A DNA stretch of 63,707 nucleotides, counting the filler, from Olpidium bornovanus S191 (lineage: Eukaryota > Fungi > Olpidiomycota), in the NCBI GenBank assembly GCA_017911155.1. It is 34 parts of 34 records of this genome, joined end to end, with 100 filler letters (N's around TTAATTAATTAA, not from the genome) between each part and the next. Parts side by side here need not be neighbours in the genome. Positions count along the whole stretch, not along the records: positions 17,048 to 20,190 come from JAEFCI010002779.1; 33 more parts are not named here. One strand, written 5' to 3'. Positions 1,460-20,290 of the stretch are shown here, piece by piece. Within the stretch, counting starts at the first letter, position 1. Each line of letters opens with the position of its first letter. The notes beneath the pieces were generated by a model. It ran no database searches, was not told the origin of the DNA, and saw nothing but the letters and a program-made list of their open reading frames with translations. The position numbers were made by a program, and so were the translations under genes.

Positions 1460-2412
1460 ATGGGCGCCGCTCGCGACCAGCTCCGCTTCGACGGGCGGGT
1501 GGTCATCGTCACTGGGGCGGGAGGAGGCAAGTGCCAAATTCCGCCCGCGTTTCGCGTACCTTTTACTCCCCGCGTCTGCGACCCAAGACCACAGTGTCGC
1601 CGCACCTCACCTCACCTCAAACCGCGGCTGCGTAGGCCTCGGGAAAGTCTACTCTCTCTATTTTGCCCAGCGCGGCGCTTCTGTTGTCGTCAACGACCTT
1701 GGGACTACGGGAACAGGGGAGGGCAAGTCGGGCCGCGCGGCGGACAGTGTGGTCGAGCAGATAAAAGCCGCGGGCGGAAAGGCGGTCGCGAACTATGATT
1801 CAGTCGAGGACGGTGACAAGATTGTCGCCACGGCCATGAAGGCCTTTGGGCGCGTCGACGTAATTGTAAACAATGCCGGGTAAGTTTTGGAGAGCGGCCA
1901 GAAAGTTTATTTTGGGCTTCGTTGGGGAGTCGGCGGGGACTGCAGCTTTTGCAGCTTCAGGCGCCGCCCTTCAATGTCTTCGGGGCGATCTCCCTAGGAT
2001 TCTGCGCGACAAGTCGTTTGCCCGTATGAGTGACGCGGATTGGGATCTGGTACACAAAGTCCACGTTCGTGGTTCGTACAAAGTCACCAAGGCGGCTTGG
2101 GACATCATGCGGAAGCAGAAGTACGGAAGAGTGATCATGACAGCTTCTGCCGCTGGCATCTACGGTAACTATGGGCAAGCCAACTACAGTTCAGGTATGC
2201 TCCAGGTCTCGCTGCAAATCTTCCGTCCCGCACTCTTTCGAGCACTTCCGTGGGTGCCGTGCCTGTTAACACCCGGACCACACTCTGTTGTACAGCGAAG
2301 TTGGCGCTTGCCGGCTTCGGATATAGCTTGGCCCGCGAAGGCGCCAAAGACAATATTCATTGCAACATAATTGCACCCTTGGCGGCGTCAAGGATGACAG
2401 AGACTATCATGC
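1460..2412 (+). CDS. FOX2: Peroxisomal multifunctional beta-oxidation protein, first SDR domain, 5' part (exons 1460-1526, 1636-1879, 1998-2194, 2296-2412)
   Basis: [67 protein letters not shown]. All four exons splice in frame. Confidence 0.96.
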
Positions 2413-2512
2413 NNNNNNNNNNNNNNNNNNNNNNNNNNNNNNNNNNNNNNNNNNNNTTAATTAATTAANNNNNNNNNNNNNNNNNNNNNNNNNNNNNNNN
2501 NNNNNNNNNNNN

Positions 2513-3332
2513 CATGACCCTAAAGTGAGAAGTAGCCGGGCGCGATTCAAGCCAGAGCAATGCGGCCGAGGATAACGCACTAAACCAGCGATCACTGACC
2601 TCCAAAGACTACCCAGCGCTCAACGCCTAGGTGCTGACGGAGTTTTTCCATATCTGCAAAAAACATCAACAACCCCCGCAACGCCGGACGCTCAAATGCA
2701 GCGCGACGGGACATCACCTTGGACCAGATCCCACGTCGTGTTTTCCTCGAGGCACCCGGGGCTGTCACGCAACACGCCAAGTCATCGGCGCATCAGATTG
2801 TTACGTATCCTGCACGTGCACAGGATCGACTTCACGTACGGGGTGGATTTCCCGCTGCCCCGCTGGTCTGTCATTCACCCACGAGAAACCCGTAAGACCG
2901 GTTGACGCGCGCAAAAAAAAAAAAAAAAAAAAAAATAATAATAATAATAATCGAGGAGCGAACAAAAAAAGCCGGGACATAGTGTCCATACCGAACAGGA
3001 TGATGCGGTACGCTTTCGGGTCGAAGTAGCGTCGATCGCGCGCGGACGTGCCGCCGCCCGGGCCTCCGTGGACGTAGACGACTGCGGTTGCGTCGAAAAA
3101 AAAAAACAAAGAGTACCGTCAAACCGCTGCGCGCTAGGAGGAGTAGACAAAGGCCCACGCTGCGCCAGGATCACGAACGCGCCCGCCGCCGCGCACCAGG
3201 GTTTCCGCTGGGATTTCCACTTTCTTCGTAGTACAGCTCGTGCACCGCAGAGACTTTGAGCCGCCCTGAAGAACGCGGCTCCGGGATGGCGGGGTACAGA
3301 AGTTTCTCACGCGCGGCCTCCTTTGCATCCAT
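2513..3332 (-). CDS. Proline iminopeptidase (S33 alpha/beta hydrolase), 5' part, six small exons
   Basis: [70 protein letters not shown] (nucleophile elbow GGSWG). ATG lies in a CCGCCGCCATGG context at 3332. Confidence 0.94.
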
Positions 3333-16600: not shown

Positions 16601-18242
16601 CCAACACTCAGCGGAAGCCGGCTGCGGGTGGGTTCGCCTTCTCCGGTAACCTTGATTTTGCTTTTAACTCCAAAATCAACTCACCGAGAAATCCCCGTTT
16701 GCGCATTTCCTCGAGTTCTGGGACGGTATGTCCTGTTTCACGTACTGTACATGTCATTTCCATCTTCCTTTGTCGCGCATTTCCACATCCCCCAGGCAGG
16801 AAATCAAATATCCGTTCCCTAACCCAACATGCTTGTCCTTCTCCCCCCACTTCTCGCTCCATACCTCAACGGCTGCTGTCTCCCTCTGTTTCGACCATTA
16901 GTACTGTTTAAACCCACTGTGCCAATCGACCTGTGACATCTTAGTAGNNNNNNNNNNNNNNNNNNNNNNNNNNNNNNNNNNNNNNNNNNNNTTAATTAAT
17001 TAANNNNNNNNNNNNNNNNNNNNNNNNNNNNNNNNNNNNNNNNNNNNAGACGCTGGCGCGGGAGGTTAGCAGAGGCCGCCGGAAGTGAAAAGGAGAAGGA
17101 ACACCGGTGCCCCCGTGATACGGAGGTATGCGCCTACCAAAAATACAAAGAAACGGCGGGCCCCCGCCAAGAAATAGTGATAATGCACGCTACTCCGCCG
17201 GCCCCCCCCCGCCCTTCCTTTTTTCTTTACGTTTTTGATAAGACGCCCACAAATTCAGAGGTCCCGACCATCCGCACCTTCAAAATACTCAAGTGCAATG
17301 TGCCGAACCGGTTGCCGTGGCGTGCGGCGTGAACATGGCTGGCATCGGTGCCACGTCGATCTCGGCAAGTAGTAACCAGAACTCATTCCTTATCTACGAA
17401 CGGACTCAAAGGTCAATGAGTTAATGAGCCTTGATCCGGCATGGCCTGTTCTTCCTGTGAGCGGCCGTGAGGGTTCAAAGGGTCCATATGACAGGAAAAA
17501 GGGCTTTCGGGATCCTGGGGAACGTTCGCAAATGTACGCAGCTTTCACAGCGCCGCCATGCGCCGCACCACCCTCCTCCCTTCCTTCCGAAGCCCCCGAA
17601 AATTCAGGTGTTCCGAACCACGCCGCAACTTCCAACGGCGAATCCTTGCCGCGGTGTGCGCGGTGCTAAGGGGCCGTCTGCGGCGCGCGCTGCCATAGAT
17701 TGGAAAAATTGCGGCACGAGAAACAAGCCTCGCCAGCAATCACGCTCCTCTGGGTACATCGAGATGCAGACGGCTTAGAGGGCTCCTGCGAAGGTCAACG
17801 GACGGGGTTCGAGGCCGAGTTTACGCGATTTCCGCGGGTCGTTTGATCAGAGGGTCTCCGCTTGTGAGAACATCTCTCCACAACGACCCGGTTCTTTTTT
17901 TATTTTTTATTTTGCTTTCGGTCTGTGCCGACGTTTCAAGCCTCCCCCAGGCTCGGCGAGTGTTTATACATATATGTGTATATGTATATACATGTGCATA
18001 TTTGTGTATGCATGACTGTCATGTGTATAAATAGCTCTCGTCCTAAATCTAAACGTACCTTGTCCCGTGTGACTCCGCCCTGCAGGCGATTCCGCGGACA
18101 ACGAAAAGTCCTTCCGCCTTCCCCACACAGAGGCAGGCACGGCCCGCTCCTCCTCCCCCCGGTCGCTCCGCCGCAGCCGCCCGGCGGCACCACCCCGGCC
18201 CCACCTCGCCCTAGCCCGCCTCCCAAGATCCCCCCGTTTGCC

Positions 18243-19817
18243 ATGCCGCACGTCGCCCGCAAGCGCGAGGCCCACGCGGTGGTCCTGGCGCCGCCGGCGA
18301 TGGGCCACGCGATCCCCGCGCTGGAGCTCGTCGAGAGGCTGTCTTCCCGCCTCCGCGTAACGCTCATGATCCCGGGGCCCTTTTTCGACACGCTGCTCAA
18401 GCGCGGGATCCTGCAGGAAGAGGGCGGCCGCGCGCCGAAAGGAGCTGCCGGAGGGAGCGGCGCCGTCAACTTCGATCCGGGCCGCGTCCGCCTCGTGCGC
18501 ATCGAGGGGCTGCCGCCGTTCCCCGTCGGCCCCTATGACGGACTCGGCATGGTTATCACCAGCCTCCGAGCTTACCGGCCCGCGCTGGAGAAATGCTTTC
18601 GGGAAGCGTCGGAACAGTTCGGTTGGGCCGCGGAAGCACCGGCGTCGGAGCCCGACGTCGACGCCCGCGCGAAGGCCGCCGGCTGGTGGCCTGAACCCCC
18701 GACGGCTCTCGCGGCAGACTTCCTCTGCGTCGATCCTCTGATCAGGGCCGCGCGCGCCGTTCCGGTCCTGAAGGAGCTGCCGACGTTCACGCTGTTCCCC
18801 GGCAACCGGCGCGCGATCTTCGACTTGTTTAAGGAACATCCAGACGAACTCGACGAAGAGGAGCTTCCGGAGGTTCCGGACGACGGCCCGGTATCAAAAG
18901 ACCAGTGGCGGCGCGAGTTCATCGACGGGACAAATCTGCTCAAACCGGGAGGGCACCCGAAGCTATTCAAGCTGTTGTTTTCGATGGCATCCAGGGGCAT
19001 AAAGCGGAGCAGCGGCTGCCTGGTTGATACGTTCGAAGAACTGGAGCAGGCGGCGGACGCCGACCGCCCCAGGTCGTGCCCGTCTTTCCCCATGCACAGC
19101 GTGGGCCCGCTGTGCGCGTGGAGCATGCGCGAAGAAGGGCAGCCGCTCATCGCCGGATCTGCCGAGTACCAGGCCATCGTGTCCTGGCTGGACGCGCAGC
19201 CGCCGCGCTCTGTCATCTACGTCGCCTTCGGGAGTGTGTTTACCCTTGAAGAGGACCAGATTCGTCAGCTCGAGACGGCCATGTTCTGCTCCGGGCACCC
19301 GTTCCTGTGGTCTCTGCGGCTCGAAAGTCAGCAGCCGCTGCTGTCGCCCGAGACCCTGTCGAACCGCAGGTCCCCGGACGTTTCTTCCATAAAAGTTCCG
19401 GGGACAGCAGGGAAATCGCCGGCGCTGTTCGTCGACTGGTGCCCGCAGCGCGCCGTCCTCGCACACCCCGCCGTCGGCGGCTTCGTTAGCCATTGCGGGT
19501 GGAACAGCTCGATCGAGTCCGTCGCCGCCGGGGTGCCGGTGATTGCCTGGCCCCTCGGCGCCGAACAGCACGTCAACGCGCAGTTCCTGGTGGATCGCAA
19601 GCTTGCCGTGCCGATGCGCCAACCCCAGGTGTTCGGCCGCACGGTCCCCGCCGGCGAAATCGCGTCTGCCGTGCGCGAGCTATTCGAAGGCCGGCCCGAG
19701 GGCGCCGGGTCGAAGACGCGCGGCGACGTGGCCCGGGACTTCGCGGAGAAAGCGAGGCGCGCCGTCGGCCCCGGTGGAAGCAGCTGGGCAAACTTGGAAA
19801 AGTTTCCTTTCTATTGA
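18243..19817 (+). CDS. Intronless family-1 UDP-glycosyltransferase with plant-type PSPG box (524 aa)
   Basis: HAVVLAPPAMGHAIPALELVERL (catalytic His), ADF (partner Asp), SVIYVAFGS, FLWSLR, PSPG WCPQRAVLAHPAVGGFVSHCGWNSSIESVAAGVPVIAWPLGAEQ (19437-19568), C-terminal GGSSWANLEKF. Complete ORF. Confidence 0.97.
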   Translation: MPHVARKREAHAVVLAPPAMGHAIPALELVERLSSRLRVTLMIPGPFFDTLLKRGILQEEGGRAPKGAAGGSGAVNFDPGRVRLVRIEGLPPFPVGPYDGLGMVITSLRAYRPALEKCFREASEQFGWAAEAPASEPDVDARAKAAGWWPEPPTALAADFLCVDPLIRAARAVPVLKELPTFTLFPGNRRAIFDLFKEHPDELDEEELPEVPDDGPVSKDQWRREFIDGTNLLKPGGHPKLFKLLFSMASRGIKRSSGCLVDTFEELEQAADADRPRSCPSFPMHSVGPLCAWSMREEGQPLIAGSAEYQAIVSWLDAQPPRSVIYVAFGSVFTLEEDQIRQLETAMFCSGHPFLWSLRLESQQPLLSPETLSNRRSPDVSSIKVPGTAGKSPALFVDWCPQRAVLAHPAVGGFVSHCGWNSSIESVAAGVPVIAWPLGAEQHVNAQFLVDRKLAVPMRQPQVFGRTVPAGEIASAVRELFEGRPEGAGSKTRGDVARDFAEKARRAVGPGGSSWANLEKFPFY

Positions 19818-19974
19818 GTTCCAATCCCCCTCCGTGCCACCCCATACTGTTGTCACGCGGGTTCGTTTCCATTTTTCCCACTCGGCCCCTACCGGCTGCA
19901 TATTTTTTTTTCACCCCAGTCTGGTGAAAAGTTTCTCGTTGTGCTACGCCGTTTCCCCCGGATCATAATTTTTT

Positions 19975-20013
<39 letters not shown>

Positions 20014-20290
20014 TCGCGTCGACGCCGGCTTTCGCGTCTACTGTAGTTTCTTTTTATTAAATTTTTTTTTCCTGCTTGGGAGCGCCAAGAACGCGGGAGA
20101 AAAAGAGAGATTTTGTCAAGGCGGAGAGCGGGGGTCAGTTGACCGCTGGGGAGGCTTTTGCGCGGTTGTCGAAAAGGGCAAACATCATGGNNNNNNNNNN
20201 NNNNNNNNNNNNNNNNNNNNNNNNNNNNNNNNNNTTAATTAATTAANNNNNNNNNNNNNNNNNNNNNNNNNNNNNNNNNNNNNNNNNNNN

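Follow-up and report, generated by a model that had tools for sequence, protein, structure and literature searches.

In a 63,707-nucleotide stretch of the Olpidium bornovanus S191 assembly (GCA_017911155.1; 34 parts of 34 records joined through 100-letter fillers, referred to here as the window), we characterized a gene at positions 18243-19817 on the + strand that encodes a UDP-glycosyltransferase (UGT). It is likely to specify a cytosolic PSPG-type GT1 enzyme that belongs to O. bornovanus or a close relative, is expressed, falls in a non-plant clade beside the land-plant UGTs and is not derived from the host. The Olpidium-type lineage in which it sits is old, patchily distributed and non-plant, and the window gene was not recently taken from a plant. 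PSPG UGTs are usually taken to typify specialised metabolism and detoxification in plants, and Olpidium is an obligate root endoparasite and a vector of plant viruses; an initial annotation, made from the sequence, had proposed the gene as a candidate for plant-to-fungus horizontal transfer.

A plant-type PSPG glycosyltransferase

The gene occupies a 3.1-kb contig piece (JAEFCI010002779.1, positions 17048-20190; GC 61%) with a single long open reading frame (ORF), on the + strand. Its product matched the Pfam UDPGT profile (PF00201) with 70.1 bits (E 2.3e-19), the cut-off being 19.5, which places it in the GT1/UDPGT superfamily. The coding sequence and its motifs, read from the sequence or, for the PSPG box and Asp159, from comparison with plant UGTs, are as follows:

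18243-19817, + strand: UGT coding sequence including the stop codon (ATG 18243, TGA 19817); 524 aa, PSPG-type GT1, intron-free
18300-18317 (aa 20-25), + strand: MGHAIP, which includes His22 (nt 18306-18308), the presumed catalytic base
18717-18719, + strand: Asp159 in AADFLC, in the column shared with the Asp of plant IIDFF, ATDFF and ISDFY
19209-19235 (aa 323-331), + strand: SVIYVAFGS, strand and loop opening the C-terminal nucleotide-sugar-binding domain
19437-19568 (aa 399-442), + strand: PSPG box of 44 aa, WCPQ...HCGWNS (aa 417-422)...WPLGAEQ (aa 436-442), the UDP-sugar site, ending in Glu441-Gln442
19773-19796 (aa 511-518), + strand: GGSSWANL, C-terminal helix

All of the motifs listed in the initial annotation were present, and the complete, intronless 524-aa GT1 that it described was confirmed by the ORF, the profile match and gap-free RNA-type contigs (see below). 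Residues G21, H22, P25, V324, Y326, G330 and G512 did not vary across alignments that included UGTs of plants, tardigrades and Sorochytrium. Compared with a consensus derived from 279 homologues in plants, the PSPG box was identical at 33 of 44 positions, close to the earlier estimate of about 30; the plants' own median was 31/44 and four bacterial GT1 outgroups reached 18-21/44. Every position of the box that is conserved in at least 90% of the plants (18/18) was retained. By sequence, the window protein is a true PSPG UGT of the plant type.

Neither a signal peptide nor a membrane segment was detected (no 19-residue window above a Kyte-Doolittle value of 1.45), the N-terminus being charged and the C-terminal residues reading ...LEKFPFY, so the enzyme would work inside the parasite and not as a secreted effector. 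An animal endoplasmic-reticulum-membrane UGT (UGT1/UGT2 type) was excluded by the missing signal peptide and C-terminal transmembrane anchor.

Relatives of the window protein

Almost all matches of a word-indexed search were plant UGTs, whose identity was 30-39% in an aligned part that made up about half of the query (mostly the C-terminal half); the one non-plant exception besides Olpidium was a protein of Sorochytrium milnesiophthora. As the initial annotation had argued, the contig is not host DNA: with a best plant identity of 39%, over about half of the protein, host contamination was ruled out. The top database match was P0001, from the same O. bornovanus metagenome-assembled genome (MAG), with 69-72% aa identity and 683 bits.

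An exhaustive HMMER search was run over 1.84 billion representatives, and the scores that follow are those of its best 150. Next after P0001 came P0240 (525 aa, 298 bits) and P0241 (512 aa, 297 bits), from the Logan assemblies SRR31067991 and SRR31068026, respectively, two environmental or host-associated proteins that both aligned over aa 18-524. They are 36-38% identical to the window protein and have in common with it the N-domain insertions, an MPH start and a C-terminal FPxY ending; their mutual identity of only 36% indicates that this small Olpidium-type clade is old. Single-domain plant UGTs peaked at about 170-171 bits over the C-terminal half only, the plant rows scoring above this being tandem fusions, and P0265 from Hypsibius reached 176 bits, slightly more than the best single-domain plant match (about 171 bits). 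Ten further representatives belong to the non-plant clade, three from Paramacrobiotus, two from Hypsibius and one from Ramazzottius (contigs of up to 3 Mb) together with four environmental ones, and P0265 joins them. S. milnesiophthora possesses at least 15 UGT paralogues on contigs of 200-770 kb, which indicates that these genes are resident in its genome. Olpidium and Sorochytrium were the only named fungal holders among the matches listed.

A pattern scan of 185,579 prokaryote species genomes (bacteria and archaea) for HCGWN plus GVPxxxWP yielded no relative. Scanning JGI metagenomes gave no close relative, the plant-like matches there covering the C-terminal half only or the full length at 30% identity or less, and tblastn against plasmids recovered distant actinomycete GT1s only. 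A profile search with the non-plant alignment, working through a word pre-filter, returned the same plant matches again and was uninformative. Our literature search found no paper tying PSPG UGTs to Olpidium, chytrids, Blastocladiomycota or zoosporic fungi.

The Logan contig that carries the P0240 gene (L002, SRR31067991_17195) also contains a 380-aa ORF at 1953-3095 on the minus strand, convergent with the P0240 gene. Its N-terminal part is Gln-rich and of low complexity and its C-terminal part looks conserved; it matched no Pfam family, and its Atlas matches were weak (score 0.71 or less, no taxa recorded).

Phylogeny and topology tests

Four actinomycete GT1/macrolide glycosyltransferase genes from the plasmid tblastn served as outgroup. 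A FastTree phylogeny of 311 rows united 28 of them in a non-plant clade (SH 97), made up of 4 Olpidium-type, 11 tardigrade-type and 13 Sorochytrium rows, as sister to all 279 plant rows (SH 95). A maximum-likelihood (ML) tree was then computed with IQ-TREE under LG+C20+F+G4 by posterior mean site frequencies (PMSF) from 75 rows and 469 columns. Its 51 plant rows span Sphagnum, Diphasiastrum, Selaginella, Ginkgo, Wollemia, Cryptomeria, Amborella and angiosperms, the last represented by UGT71/72/73/83/84/85/89/90/92 and zeatin-OGT types. Support was as follows (ultrafast bootstrap, UFBoot/SH-aLRT):

51/51 plants on one side of the branch, Olpidium-type clade outside: 97/97
Olpidium-type clade: 100/100
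Sorochytrium plus tardigrades: 98/92
Three non-plant groups joined: 86/53

The tardigrade UGTs formed a clade of their own (99/95), and the bacterial rows joined the tree on the non-plant side. When the tardigrades, Sorochytrium and the longest bacterial row were removed, the plants still stood on one side (SH-aLRT 94). Placements of the Olpidium clade among the plants were compared by the approximately unbiased (AU) test, with the cost given in log-likelihood (lnL) units:

With group E (UGT71/72/88; 24 rows, the best BLAST matches): lnL cost 32.9, p-AU 0.0013
With the UGT85/84/83/Selaginella clade (8 rows): lnL cost 33.3, p-AU 0.0009
With the remaining 43 plant rows: lnL cost 33.2, p-AU 0.0004

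All three nested placements were rejected, which speaks against a position of the window protein inside the radiation of the sampled land-plant UGTs. The Olpidium-type clade branches beside this radiation and not inside it, indicating that the gene was not acquired from the host plant. Here the tree departs from the initial annotation, since the window protein lies outside all 51 sampled land-plant UGTs and its nearest full-length relatives are non-plant or unassigned sequences. Of the transfer proposed there, the plant-type PSPG enzyme and the exclusion of host DNA stand, and the recent acquisition from a plant does not. The opposite outcome considered there, a protein nested in a vertically inherited fungal GT1 clade, holds by half only, in that the clade is non-plant and includes a second zoosporic fungus.

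Within the non-plant clade, the tardigrade proteins P0265, P0270, P0279, P0294, P0298, P0310 and P0315 grouped with Sorochytrium P0073 and P0121-P0134, outside the plants. Sorochytrium is a blastocladiomycete parasitising tardigrades, and this grouping hints at exchange between parasite and host.

Apparent transcription and presence in public runs

Public runs labelled organism A, from at least four studies and comprising RNA-type and DNA-type libraries, contain the contig piece, with a share of its words of 0.49-0.71 in the RNA-type and 0.30-0.40 in the DNA-type libraries. Run contigs were aligned to 18100-19960 only, to which they were about 99.8% identical without gaps or joints. A single 1860-nt RNA-type contig from run X3 spans 18102-19960 gap-free, and an RNA-type contig from run X1 spans 18182-19622. 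Because RNA-type contigs cross the coding sequence without a gap, the UGT gene is intronless. Word depth on the gene was 43 and 131 in RNA-type runs versus about 4 in a DNA-type run, and about 30% of the contig piece was missing from the high-depth RNA-type runs, which would fit a transcript of about 2.1 kb and not DNA carry-over. The UGT gene is thus apparently expressed. A large RNA run of 2026 labelled organism A had zero reads on the piece, suggesting that organism A is probably a host and that the owner of the gene is present in some samples only.

Runs X1 and X3 differ from the window at the same four bases (18384 T>C, 19073 G>T, 19623 C>A and 19876 T>C), and run X10 has the same base as these two at the two sites, of the four, that its contigs cover. 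The three in-gene variants are all non-synonymous (F48L, R277S and P461T). The shared differences indicate either that the window strain is unlike the commonly sampled strain or that the assembly contains errors there.

The O. bornovanus paralogue

The P0001 gene lies on a second contig of the same MAG (L001, JAEFCI010001105.1, 3255 bp) and is 80-85% identical to the window gene at the nucleotide level, in the coding region only. Between HCG and WNS of its PSPG box stands a 171-nt insert (2255-2425; borders GTACGT...CGCAG), whose removal restores H-C-G-W-N. From its borders the insert is most likely a spliceosomal intron absent from the window copy; its length, a multiple of three, and its lack of stop codons would also permit an in-frame insertion. 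The NCBI model P0001 is mis-spliced at this point and loses the HCGWN motif. In the region 950-1260, the 5' end of the paralogue gives way, just before the MGHAIP codons, to about 95 nt of poly-C, and the reading frame shifts near 1175-1190; the poly-C tract and the frame change suggest that the paralogue may be a pseudogene or mis-assembled. At residues 1-103, the annotated protein also joins the UGT to a true piece of chromodomain (Pfam Chromo, E 3.4e-11), which is probably the tail of an adjoining chromovirus-type retroelement.

Weighing of ownership and origin

Several points weigh against the interpretation given at the outset. Ownership by Olpidium is indirect, the contig being 3.1 kb long, with no second recognisable gene, in a composition-binned non-axenic metagenome; P0240 and P0241 have no assigned source organism; and the library type of the public runs was guessed ("RNA?"). 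In the tree, the relations among the non-plant lineages are weak: uniting Olpidium and Sorochytrium in one clade costs 7.5 lnL and is rejected at the borderline (p-AU 0.049), and uniting tardigrades and plants is not rejected (p-AU 0.058). The AU hypotheses were set after inspection of the tree, the outgroup is narrow and long-branched, and an attraction of long branches toward the non-plant rows may play a part. Groups A, F, H, J and K are missing by name from the plant sample, and green-algal UGTs are not knowingly in the tree, which puts a donor predating the land plants beyond its reach.

As to the deep origin of the gene, an ancient exchange in either direction between the green lineage (an alga or a stem streptophyte, ahead of the diversification of the land-plant UGTs) and an early zoosporic fungus or other opisthokont, with later spread among zoosporic fungi and tardigrades, is a serious possibility that falls short of being probable, and it is compatible with the functional explanation. 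It would account for the patchy distribution, the close proteins being those of Olpidium, P0240 and P0241 only among the best 150 representatives, and it is favoured by the Sorochytrium and tardigrade proteins within the same wider non-plant clade, by the immediate sister relation of this clade to the plants and by the empty prokaryote scan. Tardigrade UGTs have also been proposed earlier to be horizontally acquired, and plant-derived (PMC5531438). The same topology would, however, result equally if an old eukaryotic GT1 had been inherited vertically and lost many times, no identified algal sequences are at hand that could show nesting, and weaker fungal homologues may exist below the best 150 representatives. 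We put forward more tentatively, as a somewhat doubtful extension, that PSPG UGTs are not purely green, with an old zoosporic-fungal lineage sister to those of land plants, and that the tardigrade UGTs were exchanged with zoosporic fungal parasites and not with plants.

It is unlikely that the contig comes from another eukaryote travelling with roots and zoospores (another zoosporic fungus, a protist or a micro-invertebrate) and entered the Olpidium bin through its composition. The assembly does leave room for such an owner, since it was obtained by tetranucleotide binning of a metagenome from non-axenic zoospores that had been washed from cucumber roots (13,695 contigs, 29 Mb; PMC7865070). 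The contig is short and free of marker genes, allied families occur in tardigrades and a tardigrade parasite, and the exact window protein has no record in the annotated protein collection. Against this stand the 72%-identical copy on the second contig of the same MAG and the recurrence of near-identical sequence at high depth in organism A libraries of RNA and DNA type from at least four studies; together with the 2026 run that lacked reads, the pattern agrees with a specific parasite that is common on that host. Residence in the genome of O. bornovanus or of a very close relative is therefore plausible.

That Olpidium took the gene from a land plant, plausibly its host, and modifies defence compounds or hormones of the host with it is very improbable: all named close matches outside the small clade are plant UGTs, the only large well-known relatives, the PSPG box is as plant-like as that of the median plant UGT and Olpidium lives within root cells (PMC7865070), but the plants are monophyletic without the window protein, all nested placements fail, plant identity is just 30-39% and mostly in the C-terminal half, relatives occur in Sorochytrium and tardigrades, neither of which parasitises plants, and the top grass matches may partly mirror a shared GC-rich composition (G+C at third codon positions, GC3, of 0.82 in the gene).

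Predicted fold and proposed mechanism

An AlphaFold2 (AF2) model built from an 18-row non-plant alignment (pLDDT 77, pTM 0.84) predicted two Rossmann-like domains in a GT-B fold, with low-confidence loops at aa 62-72, 129-155 and 230-237 that correspond to the lineage-specific N-domain insertions. Foldseek against the PDB returned plant UGTs for all of the best 50 chains, full-length, at TM 0.58-0.79 and probability 1.00, including UGT85B1 (7zer), UGT72AY1, UGT74AN2, UGT71G1 and UGT72B1; matches among the AlphaFold database (AFDB) clusters were UGT-type by name. A PDB sequence search likewise had plant UGTs as its best matches, UGT72B1 and UGT71G1 among them.

By analogy with solved plant UGTs, the UDP-sugar would be held by the C-terminal domain through the PSPG box. 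In plant UGTs, a PSPG box ending in Glu-Gln is associated with the use of UDP-glucose, and the Glu441-Gln442 ending would make UDP-glucose the likeliest donor. His22 would act as the base and Asp159 as its partner in a catalytic dyad like that of plant UGTs, the role of His22 being drawn from structures such as UGT72B1 (2vce) and UGT71G1 (2acv), both among the PDB matches; with the help of Asp159, it may take a proton from a small lipophilic acceptor, at a hydroxyl, amine or carboxyl group. The acceptor is predicted to sit in the N-terminal domain, which bears the probably disordered insertions. On this analogy the protein is probably a cytosolic, UDP-glucose-dependent inverting glycosyltransferase for small lipophilic acceptors, with a putative role in detoxification or metabolite glycosylation. 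It may act on host phenolics or hormones within the endobiotic thallus; the allied families in tardigrades and a tardigrade parasite favour a general xenobiotic or metabolite role over a plant-specific adaptation.

Comparison with known glycosyltransferases

The window protein resembles the plant PSPG UGTs (UGT72B1 2vce, UGT71G1 2acv, UGT85B1 7zer and UGT74AN2 7w0k) in its UDPGT domain and predicted full-length GT-B fold, and has in common with them the His/Asp pair, the 44-aa PSPG box with its terminal Gln and the lack of a membrane anchor. It differs in sequence, identity being only 20-25% when the whole length is compared and 30-39% in the C-terminal half, and in about 50 extra N-domain insertion residues that are common to P0240 and P0241 and absent from plant UGTs. 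The tardigrade UGTs are likewise non-plant PSPG-type proteins with HCGWNS on the same side of the tree, but they are shorter (447-485 aa), lack the Olpidium-type insertions and are sister to Sorochytrium rather than to Olpidium. The Sorochytrium UGTs, annotated as hypothetical or UDP-glycosyltransferase-like, have a GHAIPAL N-terminal motif and HCGWNS as in the window protein; at 25-27% identity they are not its nearest relatives. Bacterial macrolide-family GT1s (Streptomyces and Pseudonocardia plasmids) have a homologous nucleotide-sugar motif, WxPQ...H.G...E...G.P...P...Q, but are about 400 aa long without HCGWNS, with a PSPG region at the 18-21/44 given above and tblastn E values no better than 3e-8.

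Small-molecule GT1s acting on phenolics occur in Mucoromycota and Ascomycota, such as Mucor MhGT1, UGT58A1/UGT59A1 and Beauveria BbGT86. Enzymes of these types were absent from the best 150 representatives and from the named matches, no targeted comparison having been made, and their absence from the best matches suggests that they are more distant than the plant UGTs.

Other features of the contig

GC content is 0.62-0.73 within the ORF versus 0.46-0.57 in the flanks. The UGT is the sole recognisable gene on the contig, as ORFs of the 5' flank gave zero Pfam matches and a tRNA search of the contig piece found none. The flanks contain the following features, for which contig ends are a rough guide only to the transcript ends:

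18026-18033, + strand: TATAAATA, possibly a TATA element, some 70 nt before the point where the RNA contig begins
18102-18242, + strand: probable 5' untranslated leader, C-rich and ATG-free (X3 contig start 18102, X1 contig start 18182)
19818-19960, + strand: initial part of the 3' untranslated region (X1 and X3 RNA-type contigs reach at least 19960)
19969-20012, + strand: T tract downstream of the UGT gene, 44 copies of period 1 with 95% matches (Tandem Repeats Finder)

From its sequence and position, TATAAATA may be a promoter element. The first AUG of the X3 RNA-type contig is that at 18243, with an ATG count of 0 in 18102-18242. Ahead of the ATG, the UGT frame contains no stop over 106 codons (17925-18242; GTG 17925), where it would encode a Pro-rich stretch from the C-rich leader; this extension is probably untranslated, since the RNA contigs begin only at 18102-18182 and ATG is absent between there and the start codon. 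An imperfect TG/TA microsatellite lies at 17960-18012, about 230 nt upstream of the UGT ATG, and the Rfam matches to mir-297/mir-3149 at the same positions (31-37 bits versus gathering cut-offs of 90-100) were rejected as low-complexity artefacts on it. The long T tract mentioned in the initial annotation corresponds to the 44 T at 19969-20012.

Implications

A conserved, apparently expressed PSPG UGT in a root endoparasite is a candidate enzyme for processing phenolics or hormones of the host within the parasite. The enzyme kind itself is already known, and the evolutionary result matters more than the enzyme candidate. The case shows how a pattern of best matches to plants can suggest host-to-parasite transfer where the tree disagrees, and it exposes a small non-plant sister lineage made up of two zoosporic fungal lineages and tardigrades. 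Denser sampling of this lineage could help to root the plant UGT superfamily and to re-date or re-source the "plant" transfers to tardigrades.

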